A DNA stretch of 63,797 bases, filler included, from Guillardia theta CCMP2712 (Eukaryota; Protista; Cryptophyta), in assembly GCF_000315625.1 (NCBI RefSeq). It is 6 parts of 6 records of this genome, joined end to end, with 100 filler letters (N's around TTAATTAATTAA, not from the genome) between each part and the next. Parts side by side here need not be neighbours in the genome. Positions count along the whole stretch, not along the records: positions 1 to 13,354 come from NW_005434422.1; 5 more parts are not named here. One strand, given 5' to 3'. Under the pieces are notes generated by a model. It saw nothing but the letters and a program-made list of their open reading frames with translations, was not told where the DNA came from and did not search any database. A program made the position numbers and the translations under genes. Positions 1 through 13,354 of this stretch are shown here, in pieces; position 1 is the stretch's first letter; every line of letters begins with the position of its first letter.

Positions 1-2115
1 GTGTCACGTGACCGGTCAGGTGAGCCTGTAGCCGGGTCACGGACCCTGTCAGCCGGCTGACATGTCACGGGCCTGCTGACACGGTCCGCTGACCGGTCAC
101 GGCCGCCCGGAGAGATCAGGCCCCCGGCCAATCTCCGGACACTTAGCCTCCTGGCGGGCCTCCAGGGGGTCTGAGGCGGGGCTGAAGGCTGCAGTCGGTC
201 TACTGACGGGCCCGGCCGGCAGGATCCGTCGAGAAACAGGGGGGTCAAGGGAGGTTTTCTTCCCCCTGGGAGAAATGTCCTATGGGTTTTTGGATCTGCG
301 ATATAAAAAAGTCTTGTCTCGGTCACTGATGTGTCACGTGACCGGTCAGGTGAGCCTGTCAGCCGGGTCACGGACCCTGTCAGCCGGGTGACATGTCACG
401 GGCCTGCTGACACGGTCCGCTGACCGGTCACGGCCGCCCGGAGAGATCAGGCCCCCGGCCAATCTCCGGACACTTAGCCTCCTGGCGGGCCTCCAGGGGG
501 TCTGAGGCGGGGCTGAAGGCTGCAGTCGGTCTACTGACGGGCCCGGCCGGCAGGATCCGTCGAGAAACAGGGGGGTCAAGGGAGGATTTCTTCCCCTGGG
601 AGAAATGTCCTATGGGTTTTTGGATCTGCGATATAAAAAAGTCTTGTCTCGGTCACGTGATGTGTCACGTGACCGGTCAGGTGAGCCTGTCAGCCGGGTC
701 ACGGCCCCTGTCAGCCGGCTGACATGTCACGGGCCTGCTGACACGGTCCGCTGACCGGTCACGGCCGCCCGGAGAGATCAGGCCCCCGGCCAATCTCCGG
801 ACACTTAGCCTCCTGGCGGGCCTCCAGGGGGTCTGAGGCGGGGCTGAAGGCTGCAGTCGGTCTACTGACGGGCCCGGCCGGCAGGATCCGTCGAGAAACA
901 GGGGGGTCAAGGGAGGTTTTCTTCCCCCTGGGAGAAATGTCCTATGGGTTTTTGGATCTGCGATATAAAAAAGTCTTGTCTCGGTCACGTGATGTGTCAC
1001 GTGACCGGTCAGGTGAGCCTGTCAGCCGGGTCACGGCCCCTGTCAGCCGGCTGACATGTCACGGGCCTGCTGACACGGTCCGCTGACCGGTCACGGCCGC
1101 CCGGAGAGATCAGGCCCCCGGCCAATCTCCGGACACTTAGCCTCCTGGCGGGCCTCCAGGGGGTCTGAGGCGGGGCTGAAGGCTGCAGTCGGTCTACTGA
1201 CGGGCCCGGCCGGCAGGATCCGTCGAGAAACAGGGGGGTCAAGGGAGGTTTTCTTCCCCCTGGGAGAAATGTCCTATGGGTTTTTGGATCTGCGATATAA
1301 AAAAGTCTTGTCTCGGTCACGTGATGTGTCACGTGACCGGTCAGGTGAGCCTGTCAGCCGGGTCACGGACCCTGTCAGCCGGCTGACATGTCACGGGCCT
1401 GCTGACACGGTCCGCTGACCGGTCACGGCCGCCCGGAGAGATCAAGCCCCCGGCCAATCTCCGGACACTTAGCCTCCTGGCGGGCCTCCAGGGGTCTGAG
1501 GCGGGGCTGAAGGCTGCAGTCGGTCTACTGACGGGCCCGGCCGGCAGGATCCGTCGAGAAACAGGGGGGTCAAGGGAGGTTTTCTTCCCCCTGGGAGAAA
1601 TGTCCTATGGGTTTTTGGATCTGCGATATAAAAAAGTCTTGTCTCGGTCACGTGATGTGTCACGTGACCGGTCAGGTGAGCCTGTCAGCCGGGTCACGGC
1701 CCCTGTCAGCCGGCTGACATGTCACGGGCCTGCTGACACGGTCCGCTGACCGGTCACGGCCGCCCGGAGAGATCAGGCCCCCGGCCAATCTCCGGACACT
1801 TAGCCTCCTGGCGGGCCTCCAGGGGGTCTGAGGCGGGGCTGAAGGCTGCAGTCGGTCTACTGACCGGCCCGGCCGGCAGGATCCGTCGAGAAACAGGGGG
1901 GTCAAGGGAGGTTTTCTTCCCCCTGGGAGAAATGTCCTATGGGTTTTTGGATCTGCGATATAAAAAAGTCTTGTCTCGGTCACGTGATGTGTCACGTGAC
2001 CGGTCAGGTGAGCCTGTCAGCCGGGTCACGGCCCCTGTCAGCCGGCTGACATGTCACGGGCCTGCTGACACGGTCCGCTGACCGGTCACGGCCGCCCGGA
2101 GAGATCAGGCCCCCG
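1..2115. repeat. 332-bp GC-rich tandem satellite, array 1 (~6.4 units)
   Basis: Near-identical units recur every 332 bp (six-frame ORF copies at 677 and 1009); the array stops abruptly at ...caggcccccg (2115). Confidence 0.98.
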
Positions 2116-4534
2116 CATTCCGTTCCAATTCCCTTCTGGATTTTTTCACGTTTCGAAAGGGGTTCTTATTCTCAGATATTTTGATTTCACGGTTCTGAAA
2201 TTTTGTACTGCGATTGAAAAAGGTTCTGAAATATTATTGTCTGACGAAAAGAATCCTTTTCGCACAATTTTGGGCCATCTCCCCGCTCAAGCCCACCGTA
2301 ATTCCCCGGCGCGCGCCGTGCCTGTGAAAATTTTTGCAATGGTCATGCTTCAGAGAAGCACGAATGAGGGTTCCATCTCTTGCAAACAACATGTTTCTAT
2401 GCCATGGTTGCTTTTCTGAGAATGGTTTTGATCAAGGTTAGCATATTCCAAATCAGTATTTGATGCATGGTGTAGGTTTGTCTATGAAATCGGTGTATAC
2501 AGAAGTGATTTGATGTTGGTTGTTCAATTTTGCCACTTATTGCTCCTTGCGATGATGGGGCAAAATCGTTATTATTCTAGCGTCATTACTCATGCACAAT
2601 TATGGAGTGTGTTGGATGTGAATGTATTTGAGTCGAGCCAGTGACTTGTCAACCTGTTCTCATGTCCACCAACAACTTGTAAATCAACAAGATGTAAATC
2701 CTCGGTGAGCCTTGATTGCTGCAAGATTTCAAAGACTCGAATACATTCCTAGCACAGTATTTCAGCTTGAGAGTTTTTCTTCAGAGCAGGCTGTCTGATG
2801 CACTATGTAGAAGGGAGAAAACTTTTCGCAGTGATTAACAGCAAAGAATTCAAGCCAGATGCGTTTTCAATTAGGAGAGCAGTGCTGATGCATTGCTCTG
2901 AGGCTGTCAAATTTGTTACGGTGCAGATGAATTCCTTGTAAACTTTCAATTGCACAAATTTTCAGATGAAGATGTTCCGTGAGTAGAGTTGAGATCATGT
3001 ATGAAGTCTCGATGAAATGAATATGAGTTTTGACAAAATCAGGCTTTTCGAACATGTGTTCAAATTTCCAGGGCCTCAGTGTTGGCAAGGCTTCGACATG
3101 ATGCCAAACATTCATATGTCTTTAGGGACACACATGTGCGGCATATGCGTGCTTGTACTAAAAGACTTGAATGTTTCTGTTGAAAGTCGATCGACAGAGG
3201 AGAAACCTTGCCACCGCGCATGCTAGTTCGAATCTTTTATTGAAAATAGACATGTTCATTACTGGACTGCATCTACACGATCAATAAGCCCATCCTTCCT
3301 TGTGCATTTGAGCTCCGATGTTCAAGTATGTGATCATTGCCACCTGGGTGACACCGCACAAAATACAAGAAGTTTTCTTGCTTCTTGGATATCAGTCTTG
3401 GATTGCTTCAAAATAGGGCGGAAGGGACGGGCAGTAGATAATTGAATGACCTCAAAATCATCTTTTGTTGCTACATTGAGTACATGCATGCCTGTTAACA
3501 AACAGACGAGGCGAATGCTCACTTGCAGCTTTGCGATTCGACAAATAAGGGCATCAGTGCATGGGCCAGGATATCCACAATGACACGGCAACAATCCAAG
3601 AACTTTGGATTGACAAACAGTCTAGACATGTAGTCATGCATTAGAATCAGTAACTTGCCTGAACACAGCTTGTTGATGCTACTGCTCTCCTTCTGATAAT
3701 AACATTGGTGGCTGTCATTCAAGTCTAAAGTTGATGGGCCATATCCCCCAGTTCCTCTGACAGCAGTTGACTTAGATATTGGCTGAGATGAATCAAGATC
3801 TCGCTAACGATCAACATGTTCCCTGACTTCGAAAAGCGTTGACATACATCGAAGTTTGAATCCATTGCACTTGGTTCATCACCACAACAGAGCTGCATTC
3901 ATGCAAGGTAGGTTCTTTTCAAGACCCTTCTTGTATCTATGCAACAATACAATATGATTCGAAGCATACACACATGATAATTCGATTGCAACACGTCCTC
4001 ATGGTATCATGGCCATCGCTCCTTGTCGTGGCTCAAGCAGAAGGCGTGTGGGGTTGAGGAATTGACCCACCCCTACCTTCCGATTTCCATCTACTCAGGC
4101 TTTTTCAAAGGTAGGGGGTACTGGCTTTGGTCAAAGTAATTTGATTCAAACTTTTCCCTTGCGAGAGGGTCATTGAGCTATGGACCACAGGGGTGGGTGC
4201 TGTTTGACCACTTACCGGTAATCGAATATGATACTTTTCGACGCCAATTCCAGTACGGAGAGCCCATACTTTTAAGATTTCATCCTTCCTCCCTTGAATC
4301 CGATCCACCCCACCCTGACTCTGACGGAGTGAAACGTACGGGTTCTCTAAACTATCTGAAACCACCCATGCGAACCTCACAGAAAATGAGGGACTTTTGT
4401 GGTACAACCTCATGTATGGGGAGCCCTGAGGACCTCCGTACAAATACCACAACGCTTTGGAATAAGTATTTTAAGGGCAGTACAAACAAAACGCCCTGGT
4501 ACTAAAGATTCCAGAAGGGGATTGGAACGGAATG
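2116..4534. mobile_element. Non-autonomous TIR DNA element 1 (~2.42 kb)
   Basis: Left end CATTCCGTTCCAATTCCCTTCTGGA matches the reverse complement of the right end CATTCCGTTCCAATCCCCTTCTGGA (25 bp, 1 mismatch); AT-rich interior with no long ORF; flanks g|...|g. Confidence 0.85.
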
Positions 4535-5327
4535 GGGCCGAGAGCCTGTGACCATCCAGCGCCGAGCAACTTCCGCCAGCCGGACCACAGAACCCACCCG
4601 GCACCGGGTACCACGTGCCACGACGGTAACTGGCAGCGCCGGCGGATTCCGGGAGCACGGTCAACGGGCGCCACTGCCGAACTTCCGGCGGACTGGAGGC
4701 CGGGCCCCGGCCGCCCGGCCCGGGCCGCCCCCGGGGATCCGGGGCATGGCAAGCACCGTGCCACGGTGTGGCAGTACCGTGTACCGGGCGGCGCCGAGGG
4801 CCTGGCACTGGGTGCCGCCGCCCGCAGTGCCACCGATGGCAGAGAGACCAAGGCGGCTCAGTACCGGAGCAAAGGTTGGCATGCGGAGGCCTGAACTGAG
4901 TTCGGAGTCCCGGTCCGGGACTGAGTCCGCCGGGGCGCCGGCCCCGCCGCGGGTCCGAGTCACCGGGTTCAGGGCCCCGGCGGCGCAGGCCCCCCCGGGG
5001 TCGGCCCGGGCGGCCGGCTGCCACTGGGTGCTGCAGTGCCAGCCTCGGGGTCGCAGGCCGGATGCCTGTCAATGCGGCGGGCCCTGCACTCGGATCGGCC
5101 CGGTCTAGTTTTCGAGATTAGAAGCCTGCCACACTGGGGCAGCCGGGACGTGGGAGTCCGATATGATATCGGATGTCTAATTCATCAGAGTCAAGTGACG
5201 CTCCGATGATTGCTTCCAAGTTCACTGACGGCAAGATCGGACTCGGACCCGAGTCATAGATATCCAGGCTTACTAGAGTCAAAATTTCTTTCCGAAGTCA
5301 TCGAGTCACCCGAGTCCGGCCGCCGGG
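4535..5327. other. GC-rich non-coding CCGG/GGCA/GAGTC island
   Basis: Dense CCGG, GTACCG, TGCC and GAGTC motifs; overlapping Pro/Gly/Arg-rich ORFs on both strands with no recognisable domain. Confidence 0.6.
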
Positions 5328-6451
5328 CATTCCATTGGGTTCTCAACTGGATTTTATTCCGTCGACGGTCTCGGCGGGGTCTTTTTCTACCTGGATTTTT
5401 CTGAATGAATAGGTTTTGGATTTCAAAGCGAAAATTTTCCTTGAAATGTTTTACTTCTGTCAAACCACGCCATTTCAAATTGTGGGATCCTGCCAGCACC
5501 GTGCCATTTCTGGAATTTTTAAACGTTGTACAGAATGTACCAATGTTGTACACGGTGTCAGTTTGGGAGACTCACGTTCAAGCAGATCGCGCCCTGTGGG
5601 CACCATGTTGTGAGATAAATACATCATTGTGATGACAAGAACATCTTTTGATGCCAAATTTGACCAGATTTGAATGTATCATGTGGGAAAACGACTGCAT
5701 TTCCTTTAAGCAGAGTGTTTTGAGGATGATCATCGGATGCATATCATGTTGCAATAAGAATTTTGTGGAAAGGAAATATTTGAATCTCAGTTCGTTGAGT
5801 TGCGTGTAAATGCAAATATGCTTTGAAGCATTGTGAGCATAGTTGTAACTGTGCATTGACTTGTAATAGTGTAAGGTATGCATTCAAATTTGCATGCTCA
5901 CGCTATCCAATAATTGTGTGACTTTCCTTGTCATACTTGCACTGAAACACCAGCTGTTTTCACACTTTCAGAAGGGAAACATGAAAGGAATCGATCAGAG
6001 AGGCAACCTTCGAAGACATAAAGGAAATGCTATTCTCCTTATTGCGATGACGGCCTAGCTTCCTGTACCAGAATGCTTCGTCGGTTGTATATGAAACATA
6101 TTTCAAGAGACTTGCTGGTGCTTTGCCATGATTGCATTTTTTTAGGCTTCTCCCAACGCATTCCACAACAGTTTGAGTCTTGTGAAATGCTCTCAACAGC
6201 CAGTGGCATGGCGATTGTAACATGTCATTGGAGTTTGAGAGGCTGGGGGAGGAGAGATGAGGGGAGAGGGGAGGGGGGAAGGAGAGGGGATAGGAGGGGT
6301 TGGAAGGAAAAGCGAAGCCTGGGAAGTATTGATATGCTGATCGCGAGAGACTGGGAGATGCCAGAGGAGAGACGGTTTACTCAAGACCACTAGCGAGGAA
6401 GGGAGGAGGGCTTGGAGGAGAGGCGAGGAAGGAGAAAGCTTCGGGTAGAGA
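5328..6451. mobile_element. Probable left part of a third CATTCC-terminated element (runs into an assembly gap)
   Basis: Sharp GC-to-AT switch at ccggg|CATTCCATTGGG; TGCA/CATG-rich interior like elements 1 and 2; right end not visible. Confidence 0.55.
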
Positions 6452-6586
6452 NNNNNNNNNNNNNNNNNNNNNNNNNNNNNNNNNNNNNNNNNNNNNNNNN
6501 NNNNNNNNNNNNNNNNNNNNNNNNNNNNNNNNNNNNNNNNNNNNNNNNNNNGGGGGCCGCGCGGTTGGGGCGATACTAGCCAGACC

Positions 6587-7637
6587 TACTGACACGGTCG
6601 CTGACGTGTACCGCCGCCCGTAGAGATCAGGCCCCCGGCCAATCTCCGGACACTTAGCCTCCTGGCGGGCCTCCAGGGGGTCTGAGGCGGGGCTGAAGGC
6701 TGCAGTCGGTCTACTGACGGGCCCGGCCGGCAGGAGTCGTCGAGAAACAGGGGGGTCAAGGGAGGTTTTCTTCCCCCTGGGAGAAATGTCCTATGGGTTT
6801 TTGGATCTGCGATATAAAAAAGTCTTGTCTCGGTCACGTGATGTGTCACGTGACCGGTCAGGTGAGCCTGTCAGCCGGGTCACGGCCCCTGTCAGCCGGC
6901 TGACATGTCACGGGCCTGCTGACACGGTCCGCTGACCGGTCACGGCCGCCCGGAGAGATCAGGCCCCCGGCCAATCTCCGGACACTTAGCCTCCTGGCGG
7001 GCCTCCAGGGGGTCTGAGGCGGGGCTGAAGGCTGCAGTCGGTCTACTGACGGGCCCGGCCGGCAGGATCCGTCGAGAAACAGGGGGGTCAAGGGAGGTTT
7101 TCTTCCCCCTGGGAGAAAGGTCCTATGGGTTTTTGGATCTGCGATATAAAAAAGTCTTGTCTCGGTCACGTGATGTGTCACGTGACCGGTCAGGTGAGCC
7201 TGTCAGCCGGGTCACGGCCCCTGTCAGCCGGCTGACATGTCACGGGCCTGCTGACACGGTCCGCTGACCGGTCACGGCCGCCCGGAGAGATCAGGCCCCC
7301 GGCCAATCTCCGGACACTTAGCCTCCTGGCGGGCCTCCAGGGGGTCTGAGGCGGGGCTGAAGGCTGCAGTCGGTCTACTGACCGGCCCGGCCGGCAGGAT
7401 CCGTCGAGAAACAGGGGGGTCAAGGGAGGTTTTCTTCCCCCTGGGAGAAATGTCCTATGGGTTTTTGGATCTGCGATATAAAAAAGTCTTGTCTCGGTCA
7501 CGTGATGTGTCACGTGACCGGTCAGGTGAGCCTGTCAGCCGGGTCACCGCCCCTGTCAGCCGGCTGACATGTCACGGGCCTGCTGACACGGTCCGCTGAC
7601 CGGTCACGGCCGCCCGGAGAGATCAGGCCCCCGGCCA
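6587..7637. repeat. 332-bp satellite, array 2 (~3.2 units)
   Basis: Same unit; the first ~40 bp after the gap are degenerate; ends at ...cccggcca. Confidence 0.97.
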
Positions 7638-10174
7638 CATGCCGTTCACAAGGCCATATGCAGGCTCTAGCAAAATTGGTCTTTTTTTTTCTCCTTGGGA
7701 AGGGGTTCATATATACACTTCCATTCAGCTACCCCGGTTTTTGCTCTCTTACTGGGGGGTAGTGAGACAGGGATAAAGTAGGGTGGGGTGATTTGAATTA
7801 TACTGGCGTGGTACCCTGTCCCCCGCCTTACTTTTTGAAGCACTTCATTTTAATTGTTTAGTCAGCGCTTCAATCGTACACATCTATGTACGGATGAAGT
7901 GCCTCTGGTACAGTCTGTACTATTCTTTTAAAGTGGTTTCGACAGGCGTCTCGAATCAGCCTCCACCCTAGTGACTTCCTTTGTCTGGAGGGGTAGAGGA
8001 CCGAAAGATTCTCTCATACCCGTGCATTTCACTGTATCACGGTACGTGGGGGTGCTAATGGAAAAGAAGGCATTTCGATTGCCGTTGGAGCTCACCACGC
8101 CAATACCCCCGGTTCCCCTTCATCACCTTTACGAAAGGCGGGGTGGGTAGCTAGCAAAGAATACAAATCTACCCTTTGATTCAAGAGTTTGAAATTGGGA
8201 AATAGGGGGTAGGGTGCTATCTCCACTCTCCTTTCCCCAAATCCCCCCTCCCTGGGCAAGCAAGAGATGGCTGATTGATCCTTCACCCGCATGCAACGAC
8301 AAGTCATCATGGTGAGAGGCTTCGAATCTATTGCTGCTTGAATGTGGATGAGAATTTAATCGTCTAATGTATCCATGTAGATAGACTAAGACCTTTTCTT
8401 AGTCTCTGACTTTGAAAGAAAGTTTTGAATTCCGCTTCTCTTACATGACTGCATGACAGAGAAAGCTGTCTAGGAATGAAGATGTCTTTGGAATACATTG
8501 CAAAAGATGAATACACCTTTTCTGCTCTCTTATTCGTTGTTTCAAGCATGAGAGCCGTATGTACGAGGATTCAGAGAGGAAGTATGGTTTACAATGCTGC
8601 ACCATCAGTTTGCAAATGAGGTGCTTTCATGCACTCCAATCTTGCAAATATGCTAGAAATATTCAAGTATTTGCAGTTCAGATCCTCAAAAGCAACATCT
8701 TCACATTAGTTCTGCTTGAGCATGCATTCAAAATGCTCAAGGATCAACATGCTCCACGTAGCTGTGGCGACATGGAAAGTCTGTTTCAACCACAGGATAA
8801 GAATCCTACAGCAATCAATGTGGCTTACTAGAGCTACAAGCATACATTGTGCATAATTAGGTTTATTTGCAACTTTTTGATGTATCTCTGCTATGCAGGC
8901 ACAACGAAGAAACCAATGTGAGGCTTATTGTGCTGACCATTGCGCATGTATTTGATGCTACTTGCGGTTGTCATTGTAATTAGATTGTTGCAAAGAATGA
9001 TACCTCATGAATGTATAAAGATTTCTGCAATCAGATCACTACCATTTGTGATGTCGATCCCAAGCTTACAGTGAGTCGGAATGGTCTACAGGGGAAGTGA
9101 TGTTTTCATCATCATTCAACCCTTGCATGCATTCTGCATTTATGTGAAATGAAAGAAGATACAGAAATGCTCTTTAGCATGGCCTCGAATGCAAGACTGA
9201 TATCACTTTATTTCACAATAGAACAAATAATACATGTGTGCATACTGTGTTGACGGTTCAAATGTCCGACATCACAGCTAGATGAACGCTCAAAACTAAT
9301 CCCACGCATCAAGAAATCAACACACTCTGCAAATCTCAGAAGTGGAGACTCTCGACAGTGTTCAAGGCTTAAGATGTCTTGATTGCCTCTGGCGGCATCA
9401 GTGTTTACATGCAATCAAACATCCTCACTGCAGTAGGCGAAATGCATGCAGAAATCTTGTGAAACAATCTATGCAATGCTTGATGTCTAATATAACAAGT
9501 GGGCTTGACTAATTACGTGGATCTGCAACATGATGCTATCTCCATCAAACAAATCTTCAAGGCATCGCATGTGGAAAATATGCAATTCAAAAATCATTCA
9601 TCGCAGGGAAGTATCTTATGATTATTCTGCGCTGCCATAAGGTTGGTGTCAAGTCAAAATGACAAGCGATCTCCTGCACTGGATTCAAACCTCATGTTTT
9701 CATCATCTTGTTCTTCATAATAACCTTTTGAACCATGGATCTCACAACGCCATTGCTGCACACTCTGTTGTCACCGAACGCATCACCACGAACCTAGCGG
9801 TCTCAGGTCTCAAACTGTGCGGACTAGAGAGCTTCAAACCTAACAAAGCCTTGCATGCTGAGATCTGATGCTGGCTACAGCAGCGGATGGTCTTACAGCG
9901 GCATCGTTGGAGGAGCAGCTTTGGTGCTACGTGCCGGCGTGTAGGGGAGACATGAGTCGGGCGTGTACGATGTTGAAAACATTTCAACCCTCTGAAATGA
10001 AAGTTAAAATACATGTAAAGGCCTAGCAGAAATGATAACTAAACTGCACTGGTACTCTTTGGAGGTATCTCTTGCTGCCGTTGAAAACTTGTTTGAATTC
10101 ACACGCCACCCCAAAAAAAACTTTCTCGAAAAGAAGAGTGGAAATTAACGAAAGGGCTAAAAGTGAACGGCATG
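7638..10174. mobile_element. Non-autonomous TIR DNA element 2 (~2.54 kb) inserted inside a satellite unit
   Basis: Perfect 12-bp TIR CATGCCGTTCAC (7638) ... GTGAACGGCATG (10163-10174); the satellite breaks at ggcca| and resumes at |aatctcc. Confidence 0.9.
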
Positions 10175-10943
10175 AATCTCCGGACACTTAGCCTCCTGGC
10201 GGGCCTCCAGGGGGTCTGAGGCGGGGCTGAAGGCTGCAGTCGGTCTACTGACCGGCCCGGCCGGCAGGATCCGTCGAGAAACAGGGGGGTCAAGGGAGGT
10301 TTTCTTCCCCCTGGGAGAAATGTCCTATGGGTTTTTGGATCTGCGATATAAAAAAGTCTTGTCTCGGTCACGTGATGTGTCACGTGACCGGTCAGGTGAG
10401 CCTGTCAGCCGGGTCACGGCCCCTGTCAGCCGGCTGACATGTCACGGGCCTGCTGACACGGTCCGCTGACCGGTCACGGCCGCCCGGAGAGATCAGGCCC
10501 CCGGCCAATCTCCGGACACTTAGCCTCCTGGCGGGCCTCCAGGGGGTCTGAGGCGGGGCTGAAGGCTGCAGTCGGTCTACTGACCGGCCCGGCCGGCAGG
10601 ATCCGTCGAGAAACAGGGGGGTCAAGGGAGGTTTTCTTCCCCCTGGGAGAAATGTCCTATGGGTTTTTGGATCTGCGATATAAAAAAGTCTTGTCTCGGT
10701 CACGTGATGTGTCACGTGACCGGTCAGGTGAGCCTGTCAGCCGGGTCACGGCCCCTGTCAGCCGGCTGACATGTCACGGGCCTGCTGACACGGTCCGCTG
10801 ACCGGTCACGGCCGCCCGGAGAGATCAGGCCCCCGGCCAATCTCCGGACACTTAGCCTCCTGGGGGGTCTGAGCGGGGCTGAAGCTGCAGTCGGTCTACT
10901 GACCGGCCCGGCCGGCAGGATCCGTCGAGAAACAGGGGGTCAA
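10175..10943. repeat. 332-bp satellite, array 3 (~2.3 units)
   Basis: Same unit; the last copy has small deletions near 10861-10885. Confidence 0.97.
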
Positions 10944-11417
10944 TAGTTGAAAGTATGTTTGAATCGGGGACCGTGTCGAGCAGTTTTAGGTTTACAAGTA
11001 TTCTTGCTTCCTCCAAACAACAAGGTTTCAAACATTAAAACTATTTTTGACCATGACACGCTTTTACACGCCTGGGGGGTGCATATAGTACAATCGAATC
11101 GGCTTGCCCTACCCTTTCCCCCATTGCTCTGCATCCGGGAAGCAACGGGGAGAGAGGGGGGCAGGGGGGAGGGAGGGAGCAGGGAGGAAGGGAGGGGAGC
11201 AGGGGGGAGGGAGGGAGGGAGAAGAGCATTAAAGGANNNNNNNNNNNNNNNNNNNNNNNNNNNNNNNNNNNNNNNNNNNNNNNNNNNNNNNNNNNNNNNN
11301 NNNNNNNNNNNNNNNNNNNNNNNNNNNNNNNNNNNNNNNNNNNNNNNNNNNNNNNNNNNNNNNNNNNNNNNNNNNNNNNNNNNNNNNNNNNNNNNNNNNN
11401 NNNNNNNNNNNNNNNNN

Positions 11418-11751
11418 CTTGATTTGAAAACAAAAATACTTATTGGCTAGATTTACTACACTCGTCAATGGCTGACACTAATAAGATTTCATGAGCGTGT
11501 ATCGAAATATACGAATAACCCTACCCCCTCCATATCAGACAAACATACCGGTACACAGGGTAGAGAGCAGCCAAGAGGCGTGTAAGCCGGAACTCAAATG
11601 CTTAAAACAAATATAAAAGAGTACTGAGTGGTACAAATCATTCTGGTACAAAATTGACTAAAACTGTATGCTTATGATCAAATTAACAGGTACAAGTGTT
11701 TGTTAAAAGGATATTAATTTATAATTGGGCATTAGTAAATGCCATGGAATG
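11418..11751. mobile_element. Probable right end of a fourth GGAATG-terminated element
   Basis: AT-rich DNA ends at gccatGGAATG|caggcccccgg where the satellite resumes; its reverse complement begins CATTCCAT, as at 5328. Confidence 0.55.
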
Positions 11752-13310
11752 CAGGCCCCCGGCCAAATCTCCGGACACTTAGCCTCCTGGCGGGCCTCCA
11801 GGGGGTCTGAGGCGGGGCTGAAGGCTGCAGTCGGTCTACTGACGGGCCCGGCCGGCAGGATCCGTCGAGAAACAGGGGGGTCAAGGGAGGTTTTCTTCCC
11901 CTGGGAGAAATGTCCTATGGGTTTTTGGATCTGCGATATAAAAAAGTCTTGTCTCGGTCACGTGATGTGTCACGTGACCGGTCAGGTGAGCCTGTCAGCC
12001 GGGTCACGGCCCCTGTCAGCCGGCTGACATGTCACGGGCCTGCTGACACGGTCCGCTGACCGGTCACGGCCGCCCGGAGAGATCAGGCCCCCGGCCAATC
12101 TCCGGACACTTAGCCTCCTGGCGGGCCTCCAGGGGGTCTGAGGCGGGGCTGAAGGCTGCAGTCGGTCTACTGACGGGCCCGGCCGGCAGGATCCGTCGAG
12201 AAACAGGGGGGTCAAGGGAGGTTTTCTTCCCCCTGGGAGAAATGTCCTATGGGTTTTTGGATCTGCGATATAAAAAAGTCTTGTCTCGGTCACGTGATGT
12301 GTCACGTGACCGGTCAGGTGAGCCTGTCAGCCGGGTCACGGCCCCTGTCAGCCGGCTGACATGTCACGGGCCTGCTGACACGGTCCGCTGACCGGTCACG
12401 GCCGCCCGGAGAGATCAGGCCCCCGGCCAATCTCCGGACACTTAGCCTCCTGGCGGGCCTCCAGGGGGTCTGAGGCGGGGCTGAAGGCTGCAGTCGCTCT
12501 ACTGACGGGCCCGGCCGGCAGGATCCGTCGAGAAACAGGGGGGTCAAGGGAGGTTTTCTTCCCCCTGGGAGAAATGTCCTATGGGTTTTTGGATCTGCGA
12601 TATAAAAAAGTCTTGTCTCGGTCACGTGATGTGTCACGTGACCGGTCAGGTGAGCCTGTCAGCCGGGTCACGGCCCCTGTCAGCCGGCTGACATGTCACG
12701 GGCCTGCTGACACGGTCCGCTGACCGGTCACGGCCGCCCGGAGAGATCAGGCCCCCGGCCAATCTCCGGACACTTAGCCTCCTGGCGGGCCTCCAGGGGG
12801 TCTGAGGCGGGGCTGAAGGCTGCAGTCGCTCTACTGACGGGCCCGGCCGGCAGGATCCGTCGAGAAACAGGGGGGTCAAGGGAGGTTTTCTTCCCCCTGG
12901 GAGAAATGTCCTATGGGTTTTTGGATCTGCGATATAAAAAAGTCTTGTCTCGGTCACGTGATGTGTCACGTGACCGGTCAGGTGAGCCTGTCAGCCGGGT
13001 CACGGCCCCTGTCAGCCGGCTGACATGTCACGGGCCTGCTGACACGGTCCGCTGACCGGTCACGGCCGCCCGGAGAGATCAGGCCCCCGGCCAATCTCCG
13101 GACACTTAGCCTCCTGGCGGGCCTCCAGGGGGTCTGAGTCTGAGGCGGGGCTGAAGGCTGCAGTCGGTCTACTGACCGGCCCGGCCGGCAGGATCCGTCG
13201 AGAAACAGGGGGGTCAAGGGAGGTTTTCTTCCCCCTGGGAGAAATGTCCTATGGGTTTTTGGATCTGCGATATAAAAAAGTCTTGTCTCGGTCACGTGAT
13301 GTGTCACGTG
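11752..13310. repeat. 332-bp satellite, array 4 (~4.7 units)
   Basis: ORF copies at 11982, 12314, 12646 and 12978 are spaced 332 bp apart. Confidence 0.98.
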
Positions 13311-13354
13311 GAATCTGAAATAGGGTTCGAATTCAGCTTTATAATTCTCATTTT

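Follow-up and report, generated by a model that had tools for sequence, protein, structure and literature searches.

The window analysed here is a 63,797-nucleotide stretch, filler included, of the Guillardia theta CCMP2712 genome (an 87-Mb cryptophyte nuclear assembly), of which we studied positions 1 to 13354. At positions 7638 to 10174 a satellite array is interrupted by a 2537-bp element with inverted ends, defined here as element 2. We conclude that element 2 is probably a non-autonomous cut-and-paste transposon that was moved by the RAG1-fold transposase of its relatives and inserted flush, without a target-site duplication (TSD). Placed by predicted structure, these relatives appear to form a new cryptophyte lineage in the RAG1/Transib-like group, one that breaks the duplication rule reported for the group.

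Positions 1 to 13354 are a tandem array of a 332-bp satellite (61-65% GC), as seen with Tandem Repeats Finder (TRF) and a phase map, and are broken by AT-rich insertions, three of which are of one kind (elements 1, 2 and 3). All features below that carry a strand are on the plus strand. Element 2 is non-coding, without a convincing open reading frame (ORF), and its ends form a perfect 12-bp terminal inverted repeat (TIR): CATGCCGTTCAC at 7638 to 7649, the same in every intact copy, and GTGAACGGCATG at 10163 to 10174, found in intact copies. On the left, the satellite (6585 to 7637) reads ...cccggccA up to unit position 296. On the right (10175 to 10943, 2.3 units) it resumes with AAtctcc at unit position 296 again, and the phase is kept. 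The filled site thus has one A more than the common unit ggccAAtctcc, which is found in 15 of the 16 window units and has 445 exact matches in the genome. Element 2 is a real mobile element, given that the genome holds about 14 full-length copies (96-99% identity) with flanks that are all different, and that its terminal motif is enriched, with 81 genome occurrences versus 7 for the reversed control.

A single unit elsewhere in the same array also has the additional A. This AAA form, ccccggccAAAtctccggacac, occurs once in the 87 Mb, at 11757 to 11778, 1.6 kb from element 2; the unique unit itself, ccggccAAAtctcc (ggccAAAtctcc), lies at 11759 to 11772 and has one genome match, versus 445 for the AA form. 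This unit is what the filled site would be without element 2, occurs at the same unit position, and is either the pre-insertion allele that element 2 hit or the product of a clean excision. We infer that the extra A at the element 2 site reflects either an AAA variant already present locally in the satellite or a one-base wobble of the insertion.

Flanks were taken from 20 complete copies, 96-99% identical, across four related subfamilies. In 6 of these copies the same base adjoins both ends, which is chance (0.245 expected per copy, P = 0.36), and in the other 14 the two bases differ. One copy has a 2-bp flanking repeat, and repeats of at least 3 bp (3-5 bp) occur in none of the 20. Copies this similar have young flanks, and for them the result excludes a regular duplication, whatever its length.

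Six insertions in repeats could be compared with uninterrupted paralogues among the fetched loci. Exact flush junctions (0 bp) were seen at four of them; element 2 in the window is at +1 and an insertion on contig C307 at -1. For the copy on C7 (L004), the joined flanks match L060:3127-3426 over 300 of 300 columns (99.3%), as well as L053, and the junction has neither gap nor overlap. The C19 copy (L061) is likewise flush against L054, and the C14 copy (L062) against two paralogues inside its own locus. The fourth flush insertion, an element 1 copy on C203 (L034), lies within a 21-bp tandem repeat beside the telomere repeat, and the tandem repeat continues seamlessly across the junction. The -1 site holds a full-length element on C307 that reads gagacaag-element-cttttttat, versus gagacaagActttttt in 131 of 131 units among the matches listed (the unit listing covers 100 of 448 matches); the A-less form of the unit is gagacaagcttttt. 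No motif was evident among the targets, and no core sequence is common to targets and ends.

These results bear on the original prediction, which had read the element 2 site as ggccA-element-AAtctcc against an empty ggccAAtctcc and had proposed a duplication of 0 to 1 bp. The sequence is as it described, and the 0-bp part of the proposal agrees with the four flush junctions. A regular 1-bp duplication does not stand: a comparison of at least 20 copies had been suggested, with matches at chance frequency named as the outcome that speaks against it, and 6 of 20 is that outcome. The figure is instead 0, from which two satellite sites depart by one base, at +1 and -1. The g on either side of element 1 had been taken as a second fit to 1 bp, but the right flank of element 1 is non-satellite DNA and the pair therefore says nothing about duplication. 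The broader claim, that the insertion has no conventional duplication, unlike the CA...TG-ended superfamilies that were listed, is upheld by the flush junctions and by the absence of repeats of 3 bp or more.

Other readings of the ends were considered and rejected. A palindromic CATG target duplication, comparable to the TTAA of piggyBac, is contradicted by the empty satellite unit, which has no CATG. A solo long terminal repeat (LTR) or LTR-like element, suggested by TG...CA one base inside the ends, is ruled out by the empty-site comparison and by the lack of 4-6 bp repeats, and a Helitron by the inverted ends and the lack of an A/T target. An apparent 19-bp duplication around the L034 copy is really the 21-bp subtelomeric tandem repeat with its seamless junction. 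That locus is a chromosome end (L034:1300-1500 and 3919-4119), with (CCCTAAA)n preceded by the 21-bp repeat TGTCTGTTACTCCAGCGGCCC, and about 20 bp, a partial repeat unit, separates the element 1 copy from the first of the telomere repeats.

The relatives of element 2 include coding elements. Element 1 (2116 to 4534) is a 2419-bp non-coding TIR element, recognised by its inverted repeat, with ends of about 25 bp starting CATTCCGTTCCAATTCCCTTCTGG (CATTCCGTTCC) and 4-6 copies of 97-98% identity in the genome. Its ends recur 5.1 kb apart on C100 (L059:1018-6120), at 80-85% identity, around an interior with a convergent 390-aa ORF and a large frame that a single frameshift breaks into 586 + 373 aa, which were queried separately. 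An intact version, with an 881-aa ORF (L064:1975-4620) and a convergent 415-aa ORF, occurs in L064 (C307), starts with the terminus CATTCCATGGCATTT and lies inside the satellite. By its ends, element 1 is related to the 5.1-kb coding element of L059 and is itself non-autonomous.

Element 3 (10944 to 11751) is a 5'-truncated copy of a third related family that ends ...AAATGCCATGGAATG and is interrupted by an assembly gap (N 11237-11417). Positions 11418 to 11637 are 97.7% identical to L064:6282-6501 (220 bp) and positions 10946 to 11137 are 92.7% identical to L029; the intact 5' end of the family, CATTCCATGGCATTT, is present in both loci. On these matches, element 3 is the non-autonomous counterpart of the L064 coding element.

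A sister subfamily of element 2 is 74% identical to it across the first 218 bp and keeps a C-terminal transposase remnant with 41-44% amino-acid identity to P0012. In all four subfamilies the termini are CATG...CATG and CATT...AATG, and the end sequence of the transposon family is CATTCCATGG. In the families of elements 1 and 3, a TTTGTAC motif is repeated in the subterminal 40-100 bp at either end (window 2198-2210 and 4436-4492, the L059 ends, and L029). By analogy with CACTA elements, these repeats are possible candidates for protein-binding sites.

Sequence searches did not link the two ORFs to known families. Neither matched Pfam at E-values up to 1, and the PDB gave no match by sequence and none at E-values up to 10 with a profile of 19 sequences. 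The genome holds many divergent paralogues with 21-54% identity and open frames of 750-1050 aa. Beyond them, a word search of sequences matched only G. theta and Hanusia phi, and phmmer against 1.84 billion representatives returned 27 matches, all cryptophyte or unnamed environmental fragments. A Schistosoma sequence (P0026, phmmer E 7e-5) was rejected as a relative because it is repetitive and unrelated. The DUF1280 model had no match in the genome, and its controls likewise gave none.

The predicted fold of the large ORF is informative. An AlphaFold model built from 19 family sequences is confident over residues 340-840, with a core predicted local distance difference test score (pLDDT) of about 90. 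When this model was compared to the PDB with Foldseek, all 48 matches at E ≤ 0.001 were RAG1, Helicoverpa Transib or the amphioxus RAG-like protein (BbRAGL); the best E-value was 4.7e-9 and the next match came at 0.16. With VIA-align, again using the predicted model as query, residues 304-856 superimpose on RAG1 480-999 (Z 17.7, 412 residues, root-mean-square deviation 4.4). HzTransib (Z 17.6) and BbRAGL (Z 16.9) score similarly, and are followed by the P element transposase as the next fold (11.2) and by Hermes (6.2).

Candidate catalytic and zinc-type residues follow the same scheme. D403, D536, C555/C558, H810/H816 and E841 are conserved across the aligned family members. D403 and D536 each come after a beta strand, C555-x2-C558 (CLFC) is 19 residues past D536, and H810-x5-H816 is followed by E841 after 25 residues. 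This pattern resembles the RAG1 layout (D600/D708/C727/C730/H937/H942/E962), a likeness of overall pattern and not of residue-by-residue alignment. The nearest clusters in the ESM Atlas are DUF1280 (0.93) and RAG1 (0.90), and DUF1280 corresponds to Chapaev transposases (PMC3985635).

Taken together, these results indicate that the protein of about 880 aa is a RAG1/Transib/CACTA-like DDE transposase, and the reading that fits best is a new lineage within the CACTA-Mirage-Chapaev-Transib group. As far as databases show, the lineage is known so far from cryptophyte algae only (G. theta and H. phi). The original prediction had suggested an unclassified superfamily and had proposed to classify any autonomous partner as a DDE enzyme or a tyrosine recombinase. 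The partner is a DDE enzyme. The idea of an unclassified superfamily holds in so far as sequence methods fail to recognise the transposase, but the predicted fold is clearly RAG1/Transib-like. Its other suggestion, an unusual integration chemistry, is now the leading inference from the junctions.

The second ORF is tail to tail with the large ORF in at least 10 divergent genome lineages. Its model is poor (pLDDT 42), a mixture of helices and a small barrel, and no RAG2-like propeller was seen in it. The structured part (approximately residues 103-211) aligns with Tudor/BAH barrels at Z 6-8.4, which is in the noise range, and has a BAH cluster at 0.80 in the ESM Atlas; a Tudor/BAH-like barrel is thus possible, as a lead only. 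About a dozen intact ORFs of 404-411 aa that are 77-79% identical to this ORF2 have no transposase match listed alongside (C169:60518-61396, C75:295581-296456, C12:578862-579728 and approximately 10 more). These lone copies could be an ORF2-only family, a lineage with a transposase too divergent to match, or recruits of the host.

We propose the following mechanism. Element 2 would retain only the terminal sequences and presumably be mobilised in trans by full-length relatives with the two convergent genes, whose RAG1-fold enzyme of about 880 aa would cut the element out and paste it elsewhere. The two 3'-OH ends of the element would be transferred to the two strands of the target at a single base-pair step (a stagger of about 0), with an occasional one-base wobble in either direction. 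If the strand transfers occur at the same step there is no gap to fill, and for this reason no duplication would arise.

Several observations weigh against this proposal. The stagger in solved RAG and Transib complexes is 5 bp, and the proposed zero-stagger strand transfer is read from the junctions. Two of the six testable junctions are not flush (+1 in the window and -1 at the autonomous element on C307); these are the two satellite sites, and private variants of the unit may account for the deviation there. Neither an excision footprint nor a polymorphic empty site was observed directly. No coding remnant was detected in element 2; its link to the transposase runs via the sister subfamily and the shared terminal motif. 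Finally, the Pfam, PDB and DUF1280 searches gave no sequence tie between the protein and any known transposase family, and its classification therefore rests on predicted structure.

The main rival is that the transposase only excises, and that the blunt, protected ends are then ligated into a chromosomal break by host end joining, without strand transfer. We consider this unlikely, though it is the alternative that survives best. The mixture of -1, 0 and +1 junctions resembles end-joining noise, and RAG-type cleavage, as a matter of general knowledge, leaves blunt 5'-phosphorylated signal ends that are joined without processing. Repaired random breaks usually lose or gain several bases, however, whereas at four of the six targets every base of the original site is still present, and not one nibbled element end was found in approximately 30 observed termini.

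A regular 1-bp duplication by a 1-nt staggered attack, with the AAA unit as an excision footprint that kept the duplicated base, has points in its favour: the site has exactly one extra A, the unique AAA unit is in the same array at the same unit position, and element 1 has g on both sides. It is already contradicted by the unequal flanks in 14 of 20 copies of 96-99% identity, as well as by the four comparator sites that are flush and the one that is -1, and we regard it as very improbable. Even less credit is due to insertion of a circular intermediate by a tyrosine or serine recombinase, in the manner of Crypton-like or DIRS-like elements. Such an enzyme would leave no duplication, as seen, and the joined ends would give a perfect 24-bp palindrome like a recombinase site, but the full-length elements encode only the RAG1-fold DDE protein and ORF2, with no recombinase, the targets and ends have no common core, and the end-to-end junction pattern was not found in the genome. 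That the missing duplication is an artefact of eroded duplications, mis-set ends or errors in repeat assembly is equally hard to credit: assembly gaps do adjoin two insertions and L027 (described below) is a redundant copy of the same junction, but the copies are 96-99% identical with young flanks and five independent uninterrupted comparators, of which three lie outside the satellite, define where the ends are.

We compared the family to known systems. Transibs typically generate 5-bp duplications, and the superfamily, as set out in the portion of the paper available to us, comprises Transib, TransibSU, Chapaev and Chapaev3, with animals as all of the species named there (Kapitonov and Koonin, PMC4411706). 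The Guillardia family is like Transib, RAG1 and ProtoRAG in its predicted core fold, an RNase H domain with inserted zinc-binding and helical domains; the match begins at the dimerisation/DNA-binding domain and reaches the C-terminal domain (Z about 17, about 415 residues). It also shares the D, D, CxxC, H...H, E pattern of Transib and RAG1 with RAG1-like spacing, as well as CA...TG ends, and with ProtoRAG it shares a second gene tail to tail with the transposase. Unlike Transib and RAG1, it shows no 5-bp duplication (none in 20 copies, and four flush junctions), and its ends, CATGCCG/CATTCCG, have only CA in common with the CACAGTG/CACWATG (CACWRTG) heptamer. It also has no detectable sequence similarity to them, and its host is a cryptophyte alga and not an animal. 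The kelch propeller of RAG2 type that is known from ProtoRAG and TransibSU was not seen in the partner ORF, for which the model is poor.

Elements of the CMCT group (CACTA/EnSpm, Mirage, Chapaev, Plavaka, ESTA and Lanisha) are described, in the part of the source available to us, as having CA..TG termini, C(2)C and H(3-4)H motifs and TSDs of 2 to 5 bp (Kojima, 2025, PMC12730594). The family shares the CA...TG termini and the C(2)C motif, and its subterminal TTTGTAC repeats recall CACTA ends. It differs in its histidines, which are spaced H-x5-H versus 3-4 in CMCT (a near match), and in the duplication, 0 bp here versus 2-5 bp in the group.

Insertion without target duplication has been described for Spy, a PIF/Harbinger-related group of eukaryotic cut-and-paste TIR transposons, according to the accessible part of the report (Han et al., 2014, PMC4122938). 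In being a cut-and-paste TIR element without a duplication, element 2 is like Spy. Spy presumably relies on a transposase of PIF/Harbinger type, with insertion between AAA and TTT, whereas the fold here is RAG1-type and the flanks have no AAA/TTT pattern. Crypton and DIRS elements are unlike the family, as its full-length members encode no tyrosine recombinase. Our literature search found no account of Transib-like elements in Guillardia or other cryptophytes; Repbase was outside its scope, so that a library entry may exist.

The broader interpretation is more tentative. It is possible, at somewhat less than an even chance in our estimation, that a deep-branching protist lineage of RAG1/Transib enzymes evolved zero-stagger integration and is accompanied by a convergent partner gene that is obligatory and may act as a chromatin reader. 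In that case, the 5-bp stagger of RAG and Transib is not set by the fold, and the two-gene layout of RAG-like transposons exists outside animals, in an alga far from them. The RAG1 enzyme family gave rise to the V(D)J recombinase, and there is a structural explanation for its 5-bp stagger; a natural enzyme with the RAG1 fold and flush insertion would offer a direct comparison for what sets the stagger. TSD length is treated as a fixed signature of a superfamily, and repeat annotation classifies by it. Transposon finders based on TSDs, together with Pfam, miss this whole family, which is active or recently active in G. theta. Within the literature searched, and going by the sections of it that were available, Spy is the only eukaryotic cut-and-paste TIR group described as lacking a duplication.

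The remainder of positions 1 to 13354 is satellite and other host DNA. In addition to the arrays on either side of element 2 (TRF; phase map), the satellite occupies 1 to 2115 (GC-rich, 6.4 units, TRF period 332 with 99% matches; phase map), where it is a host of insertions, and 11752 to 13310 (4.7 units; TRF). These four window regions and the satellite in L027, L029 and L064 are the same 332-bp repeat, which contains GTCACGTGAC palindromes and totals about 450 units over several contigs (C105, C114, C137, C252 and C307). Positions 4535 to 6451 (no strand assigned) are non-satellite DNA that adjoins element 1 and extends to an assembly gap (N 6452-6551). The region has 72% GC to about 5100 and is AT-rich beyond, and it had no match in the fetched loci. 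Between 4535 and 5100 there are overlapping long ORFs on both strands, as high GC yields. Purine-rich (GGGA/GGAG)n tracts at 6240-6451 and 11147-11236, the latter within element 3, immediately precede the gaps N 6452-6551 and N 11237-11417, and are probably the cause of both.

Two sets of element 2 copies have features of their own. L027 (C114:196577-199761) has the left satellite/element 2 junction as in the window, private unit variant included, and then runs into a gap. Because it shares the private variant and stops in the gap, we rejected the reading of L027 as a separate insertion event at this satellite site; it is either a redundant assembly copy or a segmental duplicate of the window locus. 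The copies in L002 (C3) and L010 (C16) are otherwise 98-99% identical but have altered tips (GATGCC...GGCCTA and ...GGCACG) and GC-rich flanks, and the damage is limited to the tips.

Element 2 and its sister subfamily keep a T8-T10 run, which at the 5' end is about 44 bp from the terminus and at the 3' end about 54-58 bp (window 7682-7690 and 10113-10120; L060, L061). The difference in spacing between the ends is approximately one helical turn and loosely recalls the 12/23 asymmetry of RAG signals; element 1 lacks this arrangement. Among the fetched loci, at least five insertions of this transposon group are in the 332-bp satellite, at differing unit positions, and the satellite may be a preferred or tolerated landing zone for the group.

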